From Zygnema circumcarinatum SAG 698-1b (taxonomy: Eukaryota > Plantae > Zygnematophyceae): a stretch of DNA of 64,000 bases. The first letter of the stretch is position 1. Every line of letters starts with the position of its first letter. The stretch covers positions 2,035,550 to 2,099,549 of the forward strand of contig CM074821.1 of NCBI GenBank assembly GCA_037447605.1, given 5' to 3'. The notes beneath the pieces are model-generated. The model worked only from the letters and a program-made list of their open reading frames with translations, was not told the origin of the DNA and ran no database searches. The position numbers and the translations under genes were made by a program. This document shows positions 21,401 to 63,816 of the stretch, one piece after another.

Positions 21401-24400
21401 GGAGAGGGAGAGGGAGAGGGAGAGGGAGAGGGAGAGAGAGTGGGAGACACGAGCGCCCATGAAAGGGAGGTGGAGGCCAAAGTAGGAGACGCCTGCACCA
21501 TGGCTTATGTTGTAGAGGAGGCAGGGGGGAACGAGGGATTGGCAGCCACTGGAAGTTTGAGGAAGCGGAGAAGGAGAGAAAGAGTGACAGAGGAGATTGG
21601 TGTGGAGAAGGTGGTGGATTTTGCAACCATCCGCACTCACGTGTTGCTGTTTTTAGTTGCAATGCCCTCTGTTTTTTTGACGCTTTTGCTACTCATTGAC
21701 TTTATGCAGTCCATCCAATCTGTAGGACAACTATCACCTGCGTCTGTTCTTTAGGCGCCCTTTAGCTTCTCATCTTAAGGGCATCCCTCCTAATGTGAAC
21801 AGCGATGAAGGTGGATGGCAGGCGGAGGTCGATGTAGAATACGAGCCGCCCAGACAGGGGGAGGGCTTTGCTGAGGTGAGCCTGACGTGGTCACTCAGTC
21901 GACGCTCCGCGGTAGAAATGGACCATGCTTTTGGTAGCGTGTGGTTTCTGAATGAATGCCATTAGTGGCCTCGTAATGTGGATTATGACAAAAGGCTTAT
22001 TTATTGTTGAGCTTGAATGCAATGAAATGTTACTCACGTATCCTCCTCCTCCCCACAATCGGACGTATACCTTTGTTTTTCTCCCTAAGTACATCTTCCA
22101 GACGTGTGCATAGGATTTTTCTCGTGGAATCTTATTGAATTAGTGTGCACGAGATGTAGACTCCTTTAGCCGTTTTGAGCAGACAGAATGTGGCAGATCA
22201 GTCTAACAGGCGGCTGAGTTGCTCTGCACTGACCGATTGGTCAGGACGACGAGTCAACGCTGGAGGAGGAGGAGAGGCGAGCGCGCGAAGAGGGTGCAGA
22301 CGATGCTGAAGAGGTAAAAAGCACGAAAGCGCCCGTCACTGCAGAGGGCCTGATTTGACAGCTGCTGGCCAGTTTCTCCGGGAATGTTTCTGGTGACCCT
22401 GCCTGTTCAGAATGCGGAGGAAGATTTCACACCTTGTTATTGCTGGAGGGGGTTTATCTGCCACAGTCTGGCGGACTCTAGAGGATGGCTGACGGCTGTC
22501 CCGCTCTGCAGGTTGACCTCCTGAAGCGCGAGAGTGAACTGCCGCTCGAAGAGCTTCTTGCTCACTATCGCGCGGTGAGTAAACCACATGAGGTTTCCAC
22601 CTGATTCACGTTTTTGGGGAGGTGATTGCTTACCTTTTTTTCTCGACTCAATCTGTTATTCGCCAGTAAACAGTAATTGGTGTAGATTTTCACACAACTG
22701 TTAGACGATAGTTCCTGATTCGGAGACCATTGGGAGTGTTGAGTTATTTTGCAGCGTACGAGGATTTCCAGGTGTCAGTTTTGTTTGTATTAAGCATTTA
22801 TAGCTTCAGTTGTGGACCTCCCCTGTCATTGTCGATGCGTATCAATGGTACTTTTCCCTTTCAGGAAGGGCCATAACAGCCAGTATGTCCTATGTAGACA
22901 TGCATCACGCATGTTGCGCATCAAAATTCTCGCGAGGGTTCTATGCAAGCACGTAACCTTCGGAGACCAGCGGCCGGCCAGTCAAAAAACTGTGTAGATT
23001 GCATTTTGAATACATTCAAGCGTAGAAATTCAGTCGGTCGGCGGCAGCTGCATCCCAGGAAGTCGGAGGGGAGGGGGCAGCTCTAAACATCACTTGCCAA
23101 ACTGCCGCTTTTGAGTCGATGTGAACGGGCAATACGGCTGCAGCTGTGGAACAAAATTCACGAGATGGCATTCCTGGCGTGCCGTCAACCCATTTAGCAG
23201 TGGAATGTGTCTTTTCTGTACAGCGGTAACCTGTTTATTGGCTATATGCAATGTCAGTCACGAGTTTTGGAAGCTTGAAATTACAGGACGGGCTTTCGTG
23301 CAATGGTGTACATATAGTCATGGGATTGAAGCTGAATGGTGTTGACTGGGCTGTTCTATGAGGGAGGGCTGCGATGGCAGATGAATGGAGATACCCTGGG
23401 AGAGAGTGAGCAAGAGGAGGACAAGGACGAGGATGGGAGTTCTGACGGAGGTAGTGGCAGTGAAAGTGATGGCGAGAGAGAGGCGGAGGAGGCCGTACAT
23501 ACGGAGGAAGGAGCCGAAGGGAATGCCGAGAGAGAGGCGGAGGGCCGGGGCGGCGGGGAACTGCCCAAGGTGACTGCTCCAAAGGAAGAGGAGGTCGAAG
23601 TTTGTGCAGAATTTCCAACGCGAGTTAATGAAGGTTGGGAGAGAAAGAGGTGCGATGTGAAGCTGGAGGAAGGGGCCGCAGATCATGGTGAAAATCTGAA
23701 TTGTTTAGAGAAAGGGATAGGTGATTTTGAGAAGATCATGCATCCCCTCGACAATGGTAATGATATTGCCAGCAAGGAGCGGGGATTTCTAGATGGAGCC
23801 GCTGGAACTGGGGATGTCGGTCGTTCATTAGAACCGGAAACAAACCACCATCTGGAGGGAAGAATCGAGGCAGAATATGACAGCCGGCCAGGAATGCTTG
23901 TAAAGGTGGAGAAGGAAGCCTCTCTGGGAGTGATGATGGAGAGGCACGAGGAGGAAGTAATCGAGTTGAAAACAGAGGCGGAGGAGAGCCCTGGGAAGGA
24001 GGCCCGAGACAAGAGAAGCAATGAGGAAAGGCTGGTAGATGCGGCTGCAGAAGCCATGGCTGCGCAGCCGACGGGGTATACCTTGTCGACGACCAACGTT
24101 CGGACGAAGGTGCCCTTTCTGCTCAAGGGCTCGTTGAGGGAATACCAGCACATAGGACTGGACTGGCTCGTGACCATGTACGACAAAAAGCTGAACGGCA
24201 TTCTGGCGGACGAGATGGGTCTGGGGAAGACCATCATGACCATCGCGCTGTTGGCCCACCTCGCGTGCGAAAAGGGCGTGTGGGGCCCACACCTGGTGGT
24301 GGTGCCCACATCCGTCATGCTCAACTGGGAGATGGAGTTCATGAAGTGGTGCCCCGGCTTCAAGGTCTTGACTTACTTTGGAACTGCGAAAGAGCGGAAG

Positions 24401-27400
24401 CTGAAACGGCAAGGTTGGAGCAAGGGGAATTTTTTCCATGTGTGCATTACAACCTACCGCCTCGTGATCCAGGATGCCAAAATGTTCAAACGGAAGAAGT
24501 GGAAATACCTCATCTTGGACGAAGCTCATCTCATCAAGAATTGGAAGTCGCAGCGCTGGCAGACCCTCCTCAATTTCAATGCAAAGCGGCGAATTTTGCT
24601 GACAGGGACCCCTCTTCAGAACGATCTGATGGAGCTGTGGTCGTTGATGCATTTCCTTATGCCCCACGTCTTTCAGTCTCACCAGGAGTTCCGCGACTGG
24701 TTCAGCAAACCCATTAGCGGGATGGTAGAGGGGCAGGAGTGTGTCAACAAGGCGGTGGTGGGCCGCCTTCACAATGTGCTGCGGCCTTTCCTTCTCCGCC
24801 GCCTTAAGCGCGACGTGGAGAAGCAACTCCCGCAGAAGCACGAGCACGTCATTTCCTGCCGCCTCTCCAAGCGGCAGCGTCACCTCTACGAAGACTTCAT
24901 GGCCAGCTCCGACACCAGGGCGACGCTTGCATCCGGCAACTTCCTTGGACTCATCAACGTGCTCATGCAGCTGAGGAAAGTCTGCAACCATCCCGACTTG
25001 TTCGAGGGCCGCCCCATCGTCTCCTCCTTCGACATGGAAGGCTTGGTGCTGCACTTCAGCTCGGCGGCGCTGACAGCCGGGAAAGCTTGTTCAGACCCTT
25101 TCGGCGGAGTAAATCTCGGTGCCCTCAACCTCCTCCTGTGGACTGCAGAATGCGATCTGGCAGCGTGGGAGGCCGACGAGGTAGCAGAGCTGGCTACTAA
25201 CAAGCCCCTCATAGTCGAGCTTGCGAGCACGGGGCAAGAGCAGCAGGAAGAACAATACGACAGCGTTGCTCGCGGCGGGGCCGGTCTGGTAGCGGAGGTG
25301 ACTGGCGAAGAGGGCTATCTGGCAGGGGAGGGTTTACTGGCGGAAGTCGCCCGCCGTGCGGGGGAAGCAAGGCGGCGGTGCAGTGCTCAGCGAGCGGCCG
25401 CTCTTTTGTCCCTCAGCCTCTTGCGCTGCCAAAGGAGGCCGCCCCTCGGCCGCGATTTGCGCCAAGCTGTGCGGGTAACCCTGCCCCTCCCCGCGGCTGT
25501 GGCTCTAGCGGGGGGGTGGGGAGGGTCCGCGGTCCTGGGGGAGGCGGTGAAGACGGCATTGGGGAGGGCGGAGGAGATGAAGGCTCTCATTGAAGCGTTT
25601 GTGTTTGTTACTCCGAAAGCGAGGGCGCCTGCGCCTGTGGTGTGGTGCAGTCACCCGAATCTGTCCGACGCCATGGCGGAGCAGAGGTTCGCGAGGAGGT
25701 TCACAGAGGCGGTTTCTCCACTGCTCACTCCCTTCCGAACAACTATTGTCCGACGTCAGCTGTTTTTCCCTGACCGCAGACTGCTTCAGTACGATTGTGG
25801 AAAGCTGCAGGTACATACATCCCCAACAAATGTGCCCTCATGAGATTGTCATAATGGGACATCTTCTTGTTGCATTGTTGATTCTCGTGGAGAAAAGAAA
25901 GGATCTTGATCAAGATTCTCACGATTTTCTTTCTGATTAACTGTAAGAAACGGATCATAGAGAGAGAGATTTTTTTCTTTTTTTTTTTTTGAGAGCCTTT
26001 CTTCCTTCGGCGCCCTTGGCAGGAACTCGCTGGTCTTCTTCGTCGTCTTAAATCAGAAGGACATCGGGCATTGATCTTCACTCAAATGACAAAAATGCTG
26101 GACGTTTTGGAAAGCTTCATAAATTTGTATGGATACACATATATGCGATTGGATGGATCGACCAAGCCAGAGCAACGCCAGATTCTTATGCAACGGTTCA
26201 ACACTAATCCGAAAATATTCCTTTTCATCCTCAGTACAAGAAGCGGAGGGGTAGGCATCAACCTTGTCGGAGCAGATACTGTCATCTTCTACGACAGCGA
26301 TTGGAATCCGGCCATGGATCTGCAAGCTCAGGTCAGCACGCTGCAACCTACCCAACACATCAGAATCAGTGAGAGGCGAGGCGAGAGAAGCAGAGGTGTC
26401 GAAAATGAGGGACAGTAGTAGAACAGGAGCTAGTCTTAGTTGCAGTCGTGTTGCTAGGACAGTCGTGGTAAGGGTGGGAGGCGGCAGAGGGCTTTGCACC
26501 GTCTCCGCCAGTACCAACTGCCCAGATGTGTGTGTGTGTGTGTGTGTGTGTGTTTGGGGGGGGGGGGGTGTGTGTGTGTGCGCGACCTAAGTCGGGCGCA
26601 TGCTCTCTTTCCGTGCCTGCTCTCCATCTTCGGAGGGCAGCACACTTCCATGTCCGACTGGTGGCAAGTAGGCATCTGCCTTAAGGGGAACAAGTGGTGC
26701 TCTGCCTCGTCCCCAAGATCCAATCTTGTATTTTGTAGACGATCCTGTCGTCCTTGGGGTTCCTGGGCGGATACTCGTTTTTCCTTAAGGAGGATGCTTG
26801 TACAGATGCCGCATGCCTTTTGTAGTGCATCTAAGCAGAGACATTCAAGTGAAGCATTGAGGGAAGAAGCTGGCTGAACTCACGTTCCTCTGCAAATTCC
26901 TCGGCCAGTTTGCGATTAGGGGATTTTGGACGCGTCCTTTTGATTGGCAGTTGTTCGTTGCCCATGAGTTTGCTGAGCCGCCCTTAAGCCGCGGTGAGTG
27001 CTGCAGGACCGTTGCCACCGCATAGGGCAGACCCGCGAGGTGAACATCTACCGCCTCGTCAGCGAAAGCACCATCGAAGAGAACATCCTCCGCAAGGCCA
27101 ACCAGAAGCGCGCTCTGGACGACCTCGTCATTCAAGTGAGCGCTAACTCACTGCCTCCCACCGTGCACTTGCTAAAAAGGTGGCGGATAAGCACTGTTGG
27201 GGAGCACAGTCAAGCTGACTCTCGGTTGATAACGGTGTGTTTTGCAGAGCGGGAGCTATAATACAGAGTTTTTCAAGCGGCTTGATCCTCGGGAGCTCTT
27301 TTCTGGCATGAAAGGGGCAGAAGTGGGGGAAATGCCCGCGGCGGCAGCATTACAGCCCAACCCTTGCGGAGCAGATTCAGCCGCCGAAAGACAAGGGCCC

Positions 27401-46302: not shown

Positions 46303-54501
<8,199 letters not shown>

Positions 54502-58527: not shown

Positions 58528-58700
58528 GGGTTTTTAGGGTTTTTTAGGGGTTTTTTAGAAGGTTTTTTTAGGGGTTTTTTCGGGTTTTTAGTGGTTTTTT
58601 TTTGAGAGGTTTTTTGAGGGGTTTTGTGAGGGGTTCTTTGAGGGGTTTTTTGAGGGGTTGTGTGAGGGGTTGTTTGAGAGGTTTTTAGGGTTCAGGTTCA
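58528..58700 (+). repeat. Degenerate interstitial telomere-like (TnAGGG/TnGAGGG) tract
   Basis: Exact TTTAGGG at 58533, 58543, 58567 and 58684, plus many TTTGAGGG-like variants. Confidence 0.55.
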
Positions 58701-59643
58701 GCTTGAGTGGCTAAGTGAAACATGTAAGGATACACGTAGTTCATTTTTGCCAAAGATCGGTCTACAAAGTTTTCTTAATAAACAAACGTCTAAAATTCTA
58801 ACCCTAGCAGCCTAATAATGCTTCTGGAAACCCTCTAAACTCTGAACATTGGCTAGCTTGGTGTATCACAAACGTGGTTCAAAAGATGACCTATCGCGAT
58901 GGAGCAAATTTCATTTTATGTAGGTCGCAAAGTTGTACATTTTCTTCTCCTATGAGTTAGGTGATGGTGTTGCTGCTGCTATTGGACGGGTTGTTGGAAT
59001 TGTGGCTCTTTCGGTAGGTCTATTTTCAAACTTTACTATATCATTAAAAAAAAAAAATTATGTGTTTTTAGCCTTTCTTCTTCTCGTATGTTGTACCCGA
59101 TCTCCTCATCGTAATGGTGAATGTATACTGTTTGTGCAACGTCTTCTCGGGATGGCTGCTTCAAACGGGCCTTGCCCTCGTGAGTCAACTGGGCATGGGG
59201 GTGTTTTTAGGGTTTTTGTTGTCCTGCTCTACGTAGGAGCAATTGTTTATTTGGCATTCAGGAAGGACACGGAATTCCCTTTTTCACCACCTTATGATCA
59301 ACCAGGGGACAATAGTCCAACAGATTCTGACATTCAAGTTTCAGAAGGGTTTGAAGAGTATGTTCCTAACCACTCTCATCCAGCTCAGCAAGAGCTCAAA
59401 GTCATTTCTAAAAGGAAATTTGTACGCTCCAGATATCAAAACTTTGCAAGTCTGATGATGCAAAATGGGCATAGCAAAACACATCAAGAATGTGAACCAA
59501 CTTCATCTTGAGTTGCACGCATGTATTGTTTGTGGAATTTTTATTATGCAATGCATACACTTATTGCAAAGGACCACTGGCTAACCATTTGCACGAGGCG
59601 AAGACTGACCAAAGCAAGACAAGGCGTAGAAAAAGCCTCCAAT

Positions 59644-59894
59644 AGAGAGAAAAGAGGGAAAATAGGGAAAAGAGGAAAAAGAGGGAAAAAAGGGAAAAGA
59701 GGGAAACGAGGGCAAGAGGAAAAACAAGGAAAAGAGGGAAAAGAGGGAAAAGAGGGAAAAGAGGGAAAGGAGGGAAAAGAGGAAAAAGAGAGAAAAGAGG
59801 GAAAAGAGGGAAAGGAGGGAAAAGAGGGAAAAGAGATAAAAGAGGGAAAAGACGAAAAAAAGGGACAAGAGGAAAAAGAACGCAAAGAGGAAAA
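59644..59894. repeat. (GAGGGAAAA)n 9-mer purine array
   Basis: Tandem agagggaaa units with variants, directly abutting the 7-mer satellite. Confidence 0.9.
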
Positions 59895-62871
59895 GCCATG
59901 AGCCACGAGCCACAAGCCACGAGCCACGAGCCACGAGCAACGAGCCACGAGCAACGAGCCACGAGCTACGAGCCATGAGCCACAAGCCACAAGCCACGAG
60001 CCATGAGCCATGAGCCACGATTCATGAGCCACGAGCCATGAGCCATGAGCCCTGAGCCACGAGCCACGAGCCACGAGCCACGAGCCACGAGCCATGAGCC
60101 ATGAGCCTTGAGCCACGAGCAACGAGCCACGAGCAACGAGCCACTAGCCACGAGGCACGAGCCACGAGCCACGAGCCAGGAGCCACGAGGCACGAGGCAC
60201 GTGCCACGAGCCACGAGCCATGAGCCACGAGCCATGAGCCACGAGCCACGAGCCATAGCCACGAGCCACGAGCCATGAGCCATGAGCCATGAGCCATGAG
60301 CCACGAGCCACGAGAGCCACGAGCCACGAGCCACGAGCCACGAGCCACGAGCCAGAGCCACGAGCCACACGAGCCACGAGCCACGAGCCACGAGAGCCAT
60401 GAGCCACGAGCCACGAGCCACGAGCCACGAGCAACGAGCCACGAGCAACGAGCCACGAGCAACGAGCCACGAGCAACAACGAGCCACGAGCCACGAGCCA
60501 TGAGCCACGAGCCACGAGGCACGAGGCACGAGGCACGAGGCGAGGCACGAGGCACGAGGCACGAGGCGAGGCACGAGGCACGAGGCACGAGGCGAGGCAC
60601 GAGGCACGAGGCACGAGGCACGAAGCAACAGGCACGAGGCACGCAGGCACGCAGGCACGCAGGCGCAGGCACGCAGGCGCAGGCACGCAGGCACGCAGGC
60701 ACGCAGGCACGAGGCACGCAGGCACGAGGCACGCAGGCACGCAGGCACGAGGCACGCAGGCACGCAGGCGCAGGCACGCAGGCGCAGGCACGCAGGCACG
60801 CAGGCGCAGGCACGCAGGCACGAGGCACGCAGGCACGCAGGCGCAGGCACGCAGGCGCAGGCACGCAGGCACGAGGCACGCAGGCACGCAGGCACGAGGC
60901 ACGCAGGCACGCAGGCGCAGGCACGCAGGCGCAGGCACGCAGGCACGCAGGCACGCAGGCACGAGGCACGCAGGCGCAGGCACGCAGGCGCAGGCACGCA
61001 GGCGCAGGCACGCAGGCACGCAGGCACGAGGCACGCAGGCACGCAGGCACGCAGGCACGCAGGCGCAGGCACGCAGGCGCAGGCACGCAGGCACGCAGGC
61101 ACGCAGGCACGAGGCACGCAGGCGCAGGCACGCAGGCGCAGGCACGCAGGCACGAGGCACGCAGGCACGAGGCACGCAGGCGCAGGCACGCAGGCGCAGG
61201 CACGCAGGCGCAGGCACGCAGGCACGCAGGCACGCAGGCACGAGGCACGCAGGCACGCAGGCACGCAGGCACGAGGCACGAGGCACGCAGGCACGCAGGC
61301 GCAGGCACGCAGGCACGCAGGCGCAGGCACGCAGGCGCAGGCACGCAGGCGCAGGCACGCAGGCACGCAGGCACGCAGGCACGAGGCACGCAGGCACGCA
61401 GGCGCAGGCACGCAGGCGCAGGCACGCAGGCACGAGGCACGCAGGCACGCAGGCACGCAGGCACGCAGGCGCAGGCACGCAGGCGCAGGCACGCAGGCGC
61501 AGGCACGCAGGCACGCAGGCGCAGGCACGCAGGCACGAGGCACGCAGGCACGCAGGCGCAGGCACGCAGGCACGCAGGCACGCAGGCGCAGGCACGCAGG
61601 CACGCAGGCACGCAGGCGCAGGCACGCAGGCGCAGGCACGCAGGCACGAGGCACGAGGCACGAGGCACGAGGCACGAGGCACGAGGCACGAGGCACGAGG
61701 CACGAGGCACGAGGCACGAGGCACGAGGCAGGCAGGCGAGGCACGAGGCACGAGGCGAGGCACGAGGCACGAGGCGAGGCACGAGGCACGAGGCACGAGG
61801 CACGAGGCACGAGGCACGAGGCACGAGGCACGAGGCACGAGGCACGCAGGCACGCAGGCGCAGGCACGCAGGCACGCAGGCACGAGGCACGAGGCACGCA
61901 GGCACGCAGGCGCAGGCACGCAGGCACGCAGGCACGCAGGCGCAGGCACGCAGGCGCAGGCACGCAGGCACGCAGGCGCAGGCACGCAGGCACGCAGGCG
62001 CAGGCACGCAGGCGCAGGCACGCAGGCACGCAGGCGCAGGCACGCAGGCACGAGGCACGCAGGCACGAGGCACGCAGGCACGCAGGCGCAGGCACGCAGG
62101 CGCAGGCACGCAGGCACGAGGCACGCAGGCACGAGGCACGCAGGCACGAGGCACGCAGGCGCAGGCACGCAGGCACGAGGCACGCAGGCACGCAGGCACG
62201 CAGGCACGCAGGCGCAGGCACGCAGGCGCAGGCACGCAGGCGCAGGCACGCAGGCACGAGGCACGAGGCACGAGGCACGAGGCGAGGCACGAGGCACGAG
62301 GCACGAGGCACGAGGCACGAGGCACGAGGCACGAGGCACGAGGCACGAGGCACGAGGCACGAGGCGAGGCACGAGGCACGAGGCGAGGCACGAGGCACGA
62401 GGCACGAGGCACGAGGCACGAGGCACGAGGCGAGGCACGAGGCACGAGGCACGAGGCACGAGGCACGAGGCACGAGGCACGAGGCACGAGGCACGAGGCA
62501 CGAGGCACGAGGCACGAGGCACGAGGCACGAGGCACGAGGCACGAGGCACGAGGCGAGGCACGAGGCACGAGGCGAGGCACGAGGCACGAGGCACGAGGC
62601 ACGAGGCACGAGGCACGAGGCGAGGCACGAGGCACGAGGCACGAGGCACGAGGCACGAGGCACGAGGCACGAGGCACGAGGCACGCAGGCACGAGGCACG
62701 CAGGCACGAGGCACGCAGGCACGAGGCACGCAGGCACGCAGGCGCAGGCACGCAGGCACGCAGGCACGCAGGCACGCAGGCACGAGGCACGCAGGCGCAG
62801 GCACGCAGGCGCAGGCACGCAGGCACGAGGCACGAGGCGAGGCACGAGGCACTAGGCGAGGCACGAGGCAC
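59895..62871. repeat. ~3-kb composite satellite: GAGCCAC/GAGCCAT/GAGCAAC, then GAGGCAC, then GCAGGCAC/GCAGGC blocks
   Basis: Units read directly. Approximate blocks: 59895-60515 (GAGCCAC), 60516-60642 (GAGGCAC), 60643-61647 (GCAGGCAC mix), 61648-61845 (GAGGCAC), 61846-62257 (mix), 62258-62684 (GAGGCAC), 62685-62871 (mix). Confidence 0.95.
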
Positions 62872-63323
62872 TGTAGCGAAACGCTATACATGTGTTGTAT
62901 GGCCTAGTACTTATATCCGCGGTTGCCTTTTAATGGTAAAGCACAGGTGTGGATACCGGGAGGTCTTGTGTTCAAACCTTGCAGTTGGCAGGTTTGTTAC
63001 ATTGGTATCAGAGCCAGTGCCCGGTATTTGTAATCCACCCTAAAAACACCGTGATCTCACGAGCATGAATGCGGGAGGAGTCCTTAGTGGCTGAGGGGTA
63101 GGCGTGGCCACGTGTGTTGAAGGGCTTGAGCGGCTGCTTTCGTGAAAACCCTTGAGTCTTTCGAGGGGGCGAGCCGGTTTAGGTGGGGAGGAATGTAGCG
63201 AAACGCTATACATGTGTTGTATGGCCTAGTACTTACATCCGCGGTTGCCTTTTAATGGTAAAGCACTGGTGTGGGTACCGGGAGGTCTTGTGTTCAAACC
63301 TTGCAGTTGGCAGGTTTGTTACA
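62872..63323 (+). mobile_element. Terminal-repeat retrotransposon in miniature (TRIM) with tRNA-like sequence in its LTRs
   Basis: LTR1 62872-63001 and LTR2 63194-63323: 130 bp each, TGTAGC...GTTACA, 3 mismatches. PBS TGGTATCAGAGCCAG at 63003-63017 is complementary to the initiator tRNA-Met 3' end. PPT AGGTGGGGAGGAA at 63181-63193. The internal region is 192 bp with no pol coding. No matching TSD (GGCAC vs ATTTG). Confidence 0.92.
62918..62990 (+). other. Degenerate tRNA-like cassette (Pol III A/B box) inside LTR1; second copy at 63240-63312
   Basis: 73 nt. D-arm CTTT-TAATGGT-AAAG, variable-loop-like GAGGTC, B-box GTTCAAAC, 3' end AGTTGGCA. The anticodon and T stems pair poorly, so this is not a functional tRNA. 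Confidence 0.65.
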
Positions 63324-63360: not shown

Positions 63361-63816
63361 ATGGGCCGGCAGCCCCTTGAGTCTGATATTTTTGTTTTGC
63401 ATTGCCCGGAATATTTGAATGACTCTTTGTTCTCCCTCTCCACCCGGATGACCTCTCTTGAGTTTTCTGTTGCGCAATGGAATGAACCTGCTGAAATCTG
63501 GATTCTGAACCCTACTGGAGCTACCGATCTGTTTGATAGTGTCCTTGATGCCCTCCGACGGGGGCGCCCTTCAAAGATGGTGTCGGCTTTGCACATCTTG
63601 CTTCCGCAGCACGTCCCCATCACTTGTTTCGGCCACGCCCATTGGAAAGTGGTACGGATTTGGCGGAAGGGTCACACGTTCGTGTGCTGGGACGACTCAG
63701 GACACGGCACCTCTTGCACGCTTCCGTTCCCAGTCCTTTGGCGCATGGCACGTCCCGATAAGTTGGTTGTATACTTTCGGATCCATGTTTTACGGCCGAT
63801 CCCGCGATTGCCATGA
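63361..63816 (+). pseudogene. Possible degenerate retroelement-type DNA N6-adenine methyltransferase-like ORF (151 aa)
   Basis: The pattern FSVAQWNEPAEIWILNPTG...VLDALRRG...SALHILLP...WKVVRIWRKGHTF...PFPV resembles, from memory, Dam-like domains of DIRS-type retroelements (FSxxWxxExxWxNPP[FY]). The catalytic motif is changed to NPTG. Not confirmed by search. Confidence 0.3.

Follow-up and report, generated by a model that had tools for sequence, protein, structure and literature searches.

What is the 452-bp sequence at positions 62,872 to 63,323 of a 64,000-nucleotide stretch of the Zygnema circumcarinatum SAG 698-1b genome (assembly GCA_037447605.1, contig CM074821.1; hereafter the window, whose numbering is used throughout), and how did it come to lie, with both of its ends intact, between a satellite array on one side and unique DNA on the other? 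The sequence is bounded by two direct repeats and consists of the following parts:

62872..63001, plus strand: 5' LTR, 130 bp, TGTA...TACA (direct-repeat family D5, 127/130 by alignment)
63003..63017, plus strand: primer-binding site (PBS) for the 3' end of initiator tRNA-Met, of which the first 12 nt are exact and the 15-nt extent is presumed
63018..63180, plus strand: non-coding internal region with short ORFs only and no similarity elsewhere in the window
63181..63193, plus strand: polypurine tract (PPT), 12 of 13 purines, the last nine pure, adjoining the 3' LTR
63194..63323, plus strand: 3' LTR, 130 bp, with a tRNA-like block at about 63241-63312

The two repeats start 322 bp apart and were returned by the repeat finder as a two-copy family of 130 nt. 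Their mismatches fall at repeat positions 43 (T/C), 74 (A/T) and 82 (A/G). Both copies start with TGTA and end with TACA, so that the canonical TG..CA forms part of a 4-bp terminal inverted repeat. The PBS 12-mer TGGTATCAGAGC at 63003-63014 is unique in the window on both strands, even when one mismatch is allowed (expected number 0.17). Complementarity to the 3' end of plant initiator tRNA-Met presumably extends to 15 nt (..CCAG, to 63017). The pure run of nine purines that ends the PPT was read directly at 63185-63193. Within the 192-bp core all ORFs are short and unsupported, leaving no credible coding capacity: Pfam and word searches gave no match for the ORFs of the element and revealed no gag or pol coding capacity, and the word search found no relatives of the longest one, a 57-aa antisense ORF that continues across the PPT and 20 nt into the 3' LTR.

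The probability of finding an exact 12-nt PBS by chance at precisely this position is of the order of 1e-7. This figure, the purine run and the terminal TG..CA together mean that the structure did not arise as a chance duplication; the combination of repeats, PBS, PPT and termini is far beyond chance. The element is thus a TRIM, a non-autonomous LTR retrotransposon, structurally complete and orientated along the plus strand, and its total length of 452 bp (62872-63323) and its LTRs lie within the TRIM range (LTRs of about 100-250 bp, TG..CA ends, less than 1 kb in total). An earlier note on this stretch had described two 130-bp direct repeats with TG...CA ends and three differences, a PPT directly before the second repeat, a 192-bp non-coding core and, from these, a non-autonomous TRIM, all of which is borne out. 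Its PBS of 15 nt directly after the first LTR needs one correction: the 12-mer is exact and the 15 nt presumably agree with the tRNA end, but one T spacer intervenes between PBS and LTR.

Each LTR opens with a small hairpin, TAGCG-AAA-CGCTA, within its first 17 nt (62872-62888 and 63194-63210). A TATA-like TTATATC in the 5' LTR (62911-62917) reads TTACATC in the 3' LTR (63233-63239), which is one of the three LTR differences; the remaining two lie in the tRNA-like block described below, where they affect its anticodon-arm part.

To which type of TRIM does the element belong? Classical plant TRIMs (Witte et al. 2001; Gao et al., 10.1101/010850) share with it a size below 1 kb, LTRs of 100-250 bp, a PBS for initiator tRNA-Met, a PPT, a non-coding interior and a position near genes. 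Unlike them, the Zygnema copy lacks a 5-bp target-site duplication (TSD), and its LTRs carry a block apparently derived from a small RNA. The same 12-mer is the conserved PBS of TRIM/Cassandra elements (PMC7215508), and this PBS motif is also given for TRIMs including those of rice (PMC7215508, 10.1101/010850). Cassandra resembles the Zygnema element further in keeping a relic of a small-RNA gene within a TRIM LTR. Searches for its 5S boxes A and C nevertheless gave no match in 62872-63323 at up to two mismatches, and membership in Cassandra is ruled out by these absent boxes and by the lack of an Rfam 5S match. A resemblance to 5S, seen by eye, was dropped on account of the absent boxes.

A closer counterpart is Helenus, the name given in 2024 to TRIMs with tRNA-like LTRs (Kojima 2024, PMC10886601). 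Its hosts are fungi, animals and one plant, Selaginella (PMC10886601), and the LTR sequence of Helenus-1_SMo from Selaginella moellendorffii is printed in the supplement of the same paper. Both Helenus-1_SMo and the Zygnema element are miniature LTR elements, and the tRNA-like block of the former has a putative counterpart in each LTR of the latter. The LTRs are of similar size (130 bp against 120 bp), and both elements have a PBS of the type matching the 3' end of initiator tRNA-Met (TGGTATCAGAGC in the Zygnema element, TGGTATCGGAGC in Helenus-1_SMo). The internal region measures 192 bp in the Zygnema element and 85 bp in Helenus-1_SMo, and the host is a streptophyte alga, whereas Helenus is known from only one plant. 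The block in question is:

62919..62990, plus strand: decayed tRNA-like block of the 5' LTR, at LTR positions of about 48-119, with the matches to the Helenus-1_SMo motifs

In the 5' LTR it comprises a TTTT run (62928-62931), a D-arm or box A-like part (62932-62944) and a T-arm or box B-like part (62959-62978). The comparison with the Helenus-1_SMo LTR consisted of searches with two short motifs, the remainder being judged by eye. The T-arm 20-mer of Helenus-1_SMo matches both LTRs at 17 of 20 positions and nothing else in the window (expected number 0.01), a statistic weakened by the fact that both motifs were picked after the resemblance had been seen by eye. Its D-arm 13-mer matches both LTRs at 11 of 13 positions; D-arm and T-arm blocks are collinear in the two elements, with an identical spacing of 27 nt. 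The stretch between them is unrelated to Helenus-1_SMo (1 of 14 positions identical, by eye), and the anticodon-arm stretch is accordingly among the points in which the elements differ, together with the missing 5-bp TSD and the failure of Rfam and ARAGORN to report a tRNA in the Zygnema element. Measured against the consensus used for this comparison (box A TRGCY .. YGG, box B GGTTC), the box A region of the Zygnema element reads TTGCC, an inserted T run and TGG, and its box B reads TGTTC, so each departs by one or more changes; Helenus-1_SMo has neither the inserted T run nor TGTTC in place of GGTTC.

General tRNA detection responds poorly to the block. Rfam reported no tRNA or 5S RNA at E values up to 10, either on 801 nt or on the LTR alone, and ARAGORN found no tRNA at default settings. 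A cloverleaf was returned by ARAGORN at the 75% and 70% thresholds only, at which shuffled repeats also score (14% and 28%, respectively), as do ordinary tiles of the window (11% and 19%). A scan for boxes A and B in their textbook consensus form was equalled by about 16% of shuffles. The surviving blocks, to judge from their motifs, are those conserved in all tRNAs and carrying boxes A and B, the other parts apparently having gone; that these same blocks are the ones common to both elements is no proof of common descent. We regard it as very probable that the element is a genuine Helenus-type TRIM copy whose LTRs retain a worn relic of a tRNA. Whether the putative tRNA-like promoter is used by RNA polymerase III in the present copy appears doubtful, because box A is disrupted and the block contains the TTTT run at 62928-62931, which would tend to halt this polymerase early. 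TRIMs of this kind weakly mimic tRNA genes and sit near genes, which matters for annotation.

The earlier note had supposed a possibly uncatalogued algal TRIM family. This stands at the level of the family only, since both TRIMs of algae (10.1101/010850) and Helenus (PMC10886601) have already been described, the former from C. reinhardtii, V. carteri as well as C. crispus. A literature search for TRIMs in streptophyte algae returned nothing specific, the word 'trim' mostly matching read-trimming software.

Relatives of the element were sought in several collections. A blastn comparison at word size 7 detected no other copy within the window, which likewise showed no solo LTR, autonomous partner, further PBS or other LTR pair of at least 80 bp. 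Scans of prokaryote genomes and viruses with a 23-nt LTR word returned no relatives. A metagenome scan for the box B-like motif together with the PBS gave two matches, both unrelated to the element: the first, an AT-rich LTR end of plant-like character, has only the PBS in common with it, and the second is a chance match in a bacterial gene. On the AT-rich, plant-like metagenome contig L001 (5538-5554) the PBS is identical to that of the element over 16-17 nt (TGGTATCAGAGCCAGT) and stands behind an unrelated LTR end; because of this longer identity, the complement of initiator tRNA-Met may extend beyond 15 nt in some hosts.

The mobility of such an element would follow the course established for LTR retroelements. 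An RNA reaching from the start of the 5' LTR to the end of the 3' LTR would be packaged by Gag and Pol of an autonomous partner. The 3' end of initiator tRNA-Met would then anneal to the PBS and prime minus-strand DNA, the purine tract would prime plus-strand DNA, and the integrase of the partner would act on the TG..CA ends.

The second part of our question concerns the flanks. No TSD of 4, 5 or 6 bp is present, even if either flank is shifted by 0-5 nt; the element is preceded by GGCAC and followed by ATTTG. The right flank is unique sequence and not satellite. On the left lies the following array:

59898..62871, no strand assigned: satellite of about 3 kb, 7- and 8-bp units (TRF arrays 59900-62871 and 60513-62838)

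Its units are a degenerate GAGCCAC at the left and change rightward to GAGGCAC and the 8-mer CACGCAGG. Unit purity per block shows that the right edge is canonical through 62871, the base that precedes the 5' LTR, and that the left edge is frayed. The earlier note was right both in reporting no 5-bp TSD and in describing the left LTR as fused straight onto the satellite. A sharp near edge together with a frayed far edge suggests that the array was cut in its interior. A simple insertion of the satellite between a TSD and the LTR is ruled out, ATTTG being absent at the far edge of the satellite. The lack of a TSD makes it probable that the element did not originally insert between the two sequences that flank it now.

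Several features of this surrounding deserve mention in their own right. The satellite (59898-62871) has about 73-77% G+C and a strong skew of A over T. It is preceded by a (AGAGGGAAA)n array at 59644-59895, and the whole stretch of the window from 55 to 63 kb is rich in simple repeats. Interstitial repeats of T runs and G runs, TTTTTAGGGT and GGGTTTTTTGAG, at 58531-58686 resemble variants of the green-algal telomere repeat, and shorter copies are found near 59200.

Among the non-autonomous LTR elements of sugar beet, 229 of 1,581 full-length copies, or about 14%, lack TSDs, and for young families the authors blame the loss on recombination (PMC13570524). The reading of the Zygnema locus that we consider first is of this kind: unequal homologous recombination would have taken place between one family copy inside the satellite and another beside the unique sequence that now lies to the right. 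Such an exchange between two copies would leave the element ends exact, eliminate the duplications that once matched and sever the array internally. This course of events fits the sugar beet base rate, and we give recombination between two family copies roughly an even chance, or slightly under, of accounting for the present flanks.

The LTRs diverge by 2.3%, and three differences in 130 bp give an interval of about 0.5-6.6%; at the rates generally assumed for plants, 2.3% taken at face value would amount to some 1-2 million years, again with a wide interval. Should the present copy have arisen by recombination between two elements, the divergence measures the difference between two copies and not an age. 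The recent insertion proposed in the earlier note is thus unsupported: there is no TSD, the flanks are probably not original, the divergence would give no age for a recombinant, and the interval is broad. A structurally perfect element without a footprint shows in addition that ages from LTR identity and calls of recent insertion are unsafe when made from structure alone.

Recombination between copies has to be weighed against other ways of losing, or never making, a duplication. Insertion at or in the satellite may have been normal, with the later loss of one flank and its 5-bp duplication by deletion or by satellite turnover through slippage, unequal exchange or conversion, and no second TRIM copy involved. 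The array is large, heterogeneous and evidently dynamic, and it lies in the stretch of simple repeats noted above, all of which speaks for such a course; yet the deletion or the spread of the array would need to end precisely at the last base beyond an intact LTR, and this on both sides, and the pentamer of the right flank has left no trace at the far edge of the satellite. We consider this explanation unlikely.

The junction itself could be an artefact of assembly, in which a repeat-rich contig end was joined to a TRIM copy. Both partners are repeats of the sort that assemblers handle poorly, and the junction is exact, but neither an N run nor a visible change of quality marks it, and the element is complete and continuous with its right flank, so that misassembly appears distinctly improbable.

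Capture of cDNA at chromosome breaks is known for yeast Ty1. Here, a cDNA of the element might have been taken up by end joining, without integrase, at a break in the break-prone satellite, and the duplication would never have been made. The absence of a TSD and the position of one junction within a G-rich repeat agree with this, but neither LTR end is short of a single base, the right junction lacks the extra T expected of unprocessed cDNA, and the right flank is not satellite; capture is accordingly highly improbable. Alternatively, the repeats could represent an immobile tandem duplication of 322 bp that arose locally, its PBS- and PPT-like motifs being fortuitous. This would be in keeping with the single copy in the window, the missing TSD and the lack of relatives in the collections scanned, but it is scarcely credible given that an exact 12-nt (probably 15-nt) PBS 1 nt past the repeat, a purine run adjoining the second repeat and TG..CA ends on both are too specific for chance and that the tRNA-like block agrees in two short motifs with the published LTR of a Helenus element.

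Taken as a whole, the 452-bp sequence is an ordinary mobile element whose flanks were probably rearranged after its insertion. A single such element matters little, TRIMs being widespread and the type with tRNA-like LTRs having been named since 2024. If its membership at the family level holds, a green alga would join a group for which a single plant host has been described. A bolder reading would see here an algal Helenus family that is still active, with the tRNA relic as its putative RNA polymerase III promoter, and, separately, a TSD-less copy that records recombination of one TRIM with another; on the present sequence we hold this reading to be improbable. Were it true, the range of the TRIMp3 elements would grow beyond a single lycophyte to include algae related to land plants, and recombination between TRIMs would have removed a piece of chromosome and split a satellite array.

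An ORF on the same strand as the element lies 125 bp downstream of the 3' LTR:

63448..63813, plus strand: unannotated 122-aa ORF, possibly related to Ulp1/C48 peptidases

Its stop codon (63814-63816) is located 184 bases before the end of the window. Pfam gave no match for it, and its nearest Atlas clusters carry Peptidase_C48 (Ulp1), a weak connection (score 0.90, 147 shared features). Inspection by eye shows an H-W ... D-S motif, and the ORF could be a gene or a fragment of a transposon-borne protease. Two long, uninterrupted ORFs of host genes are found further to the left, both on the plus strand: one at 23336-25843 with an SNF2-family helicase domain (E 5.6e-89), the other at 53160-54026 with a beta-galactosidase small-chain domain (E 2.3e-51).
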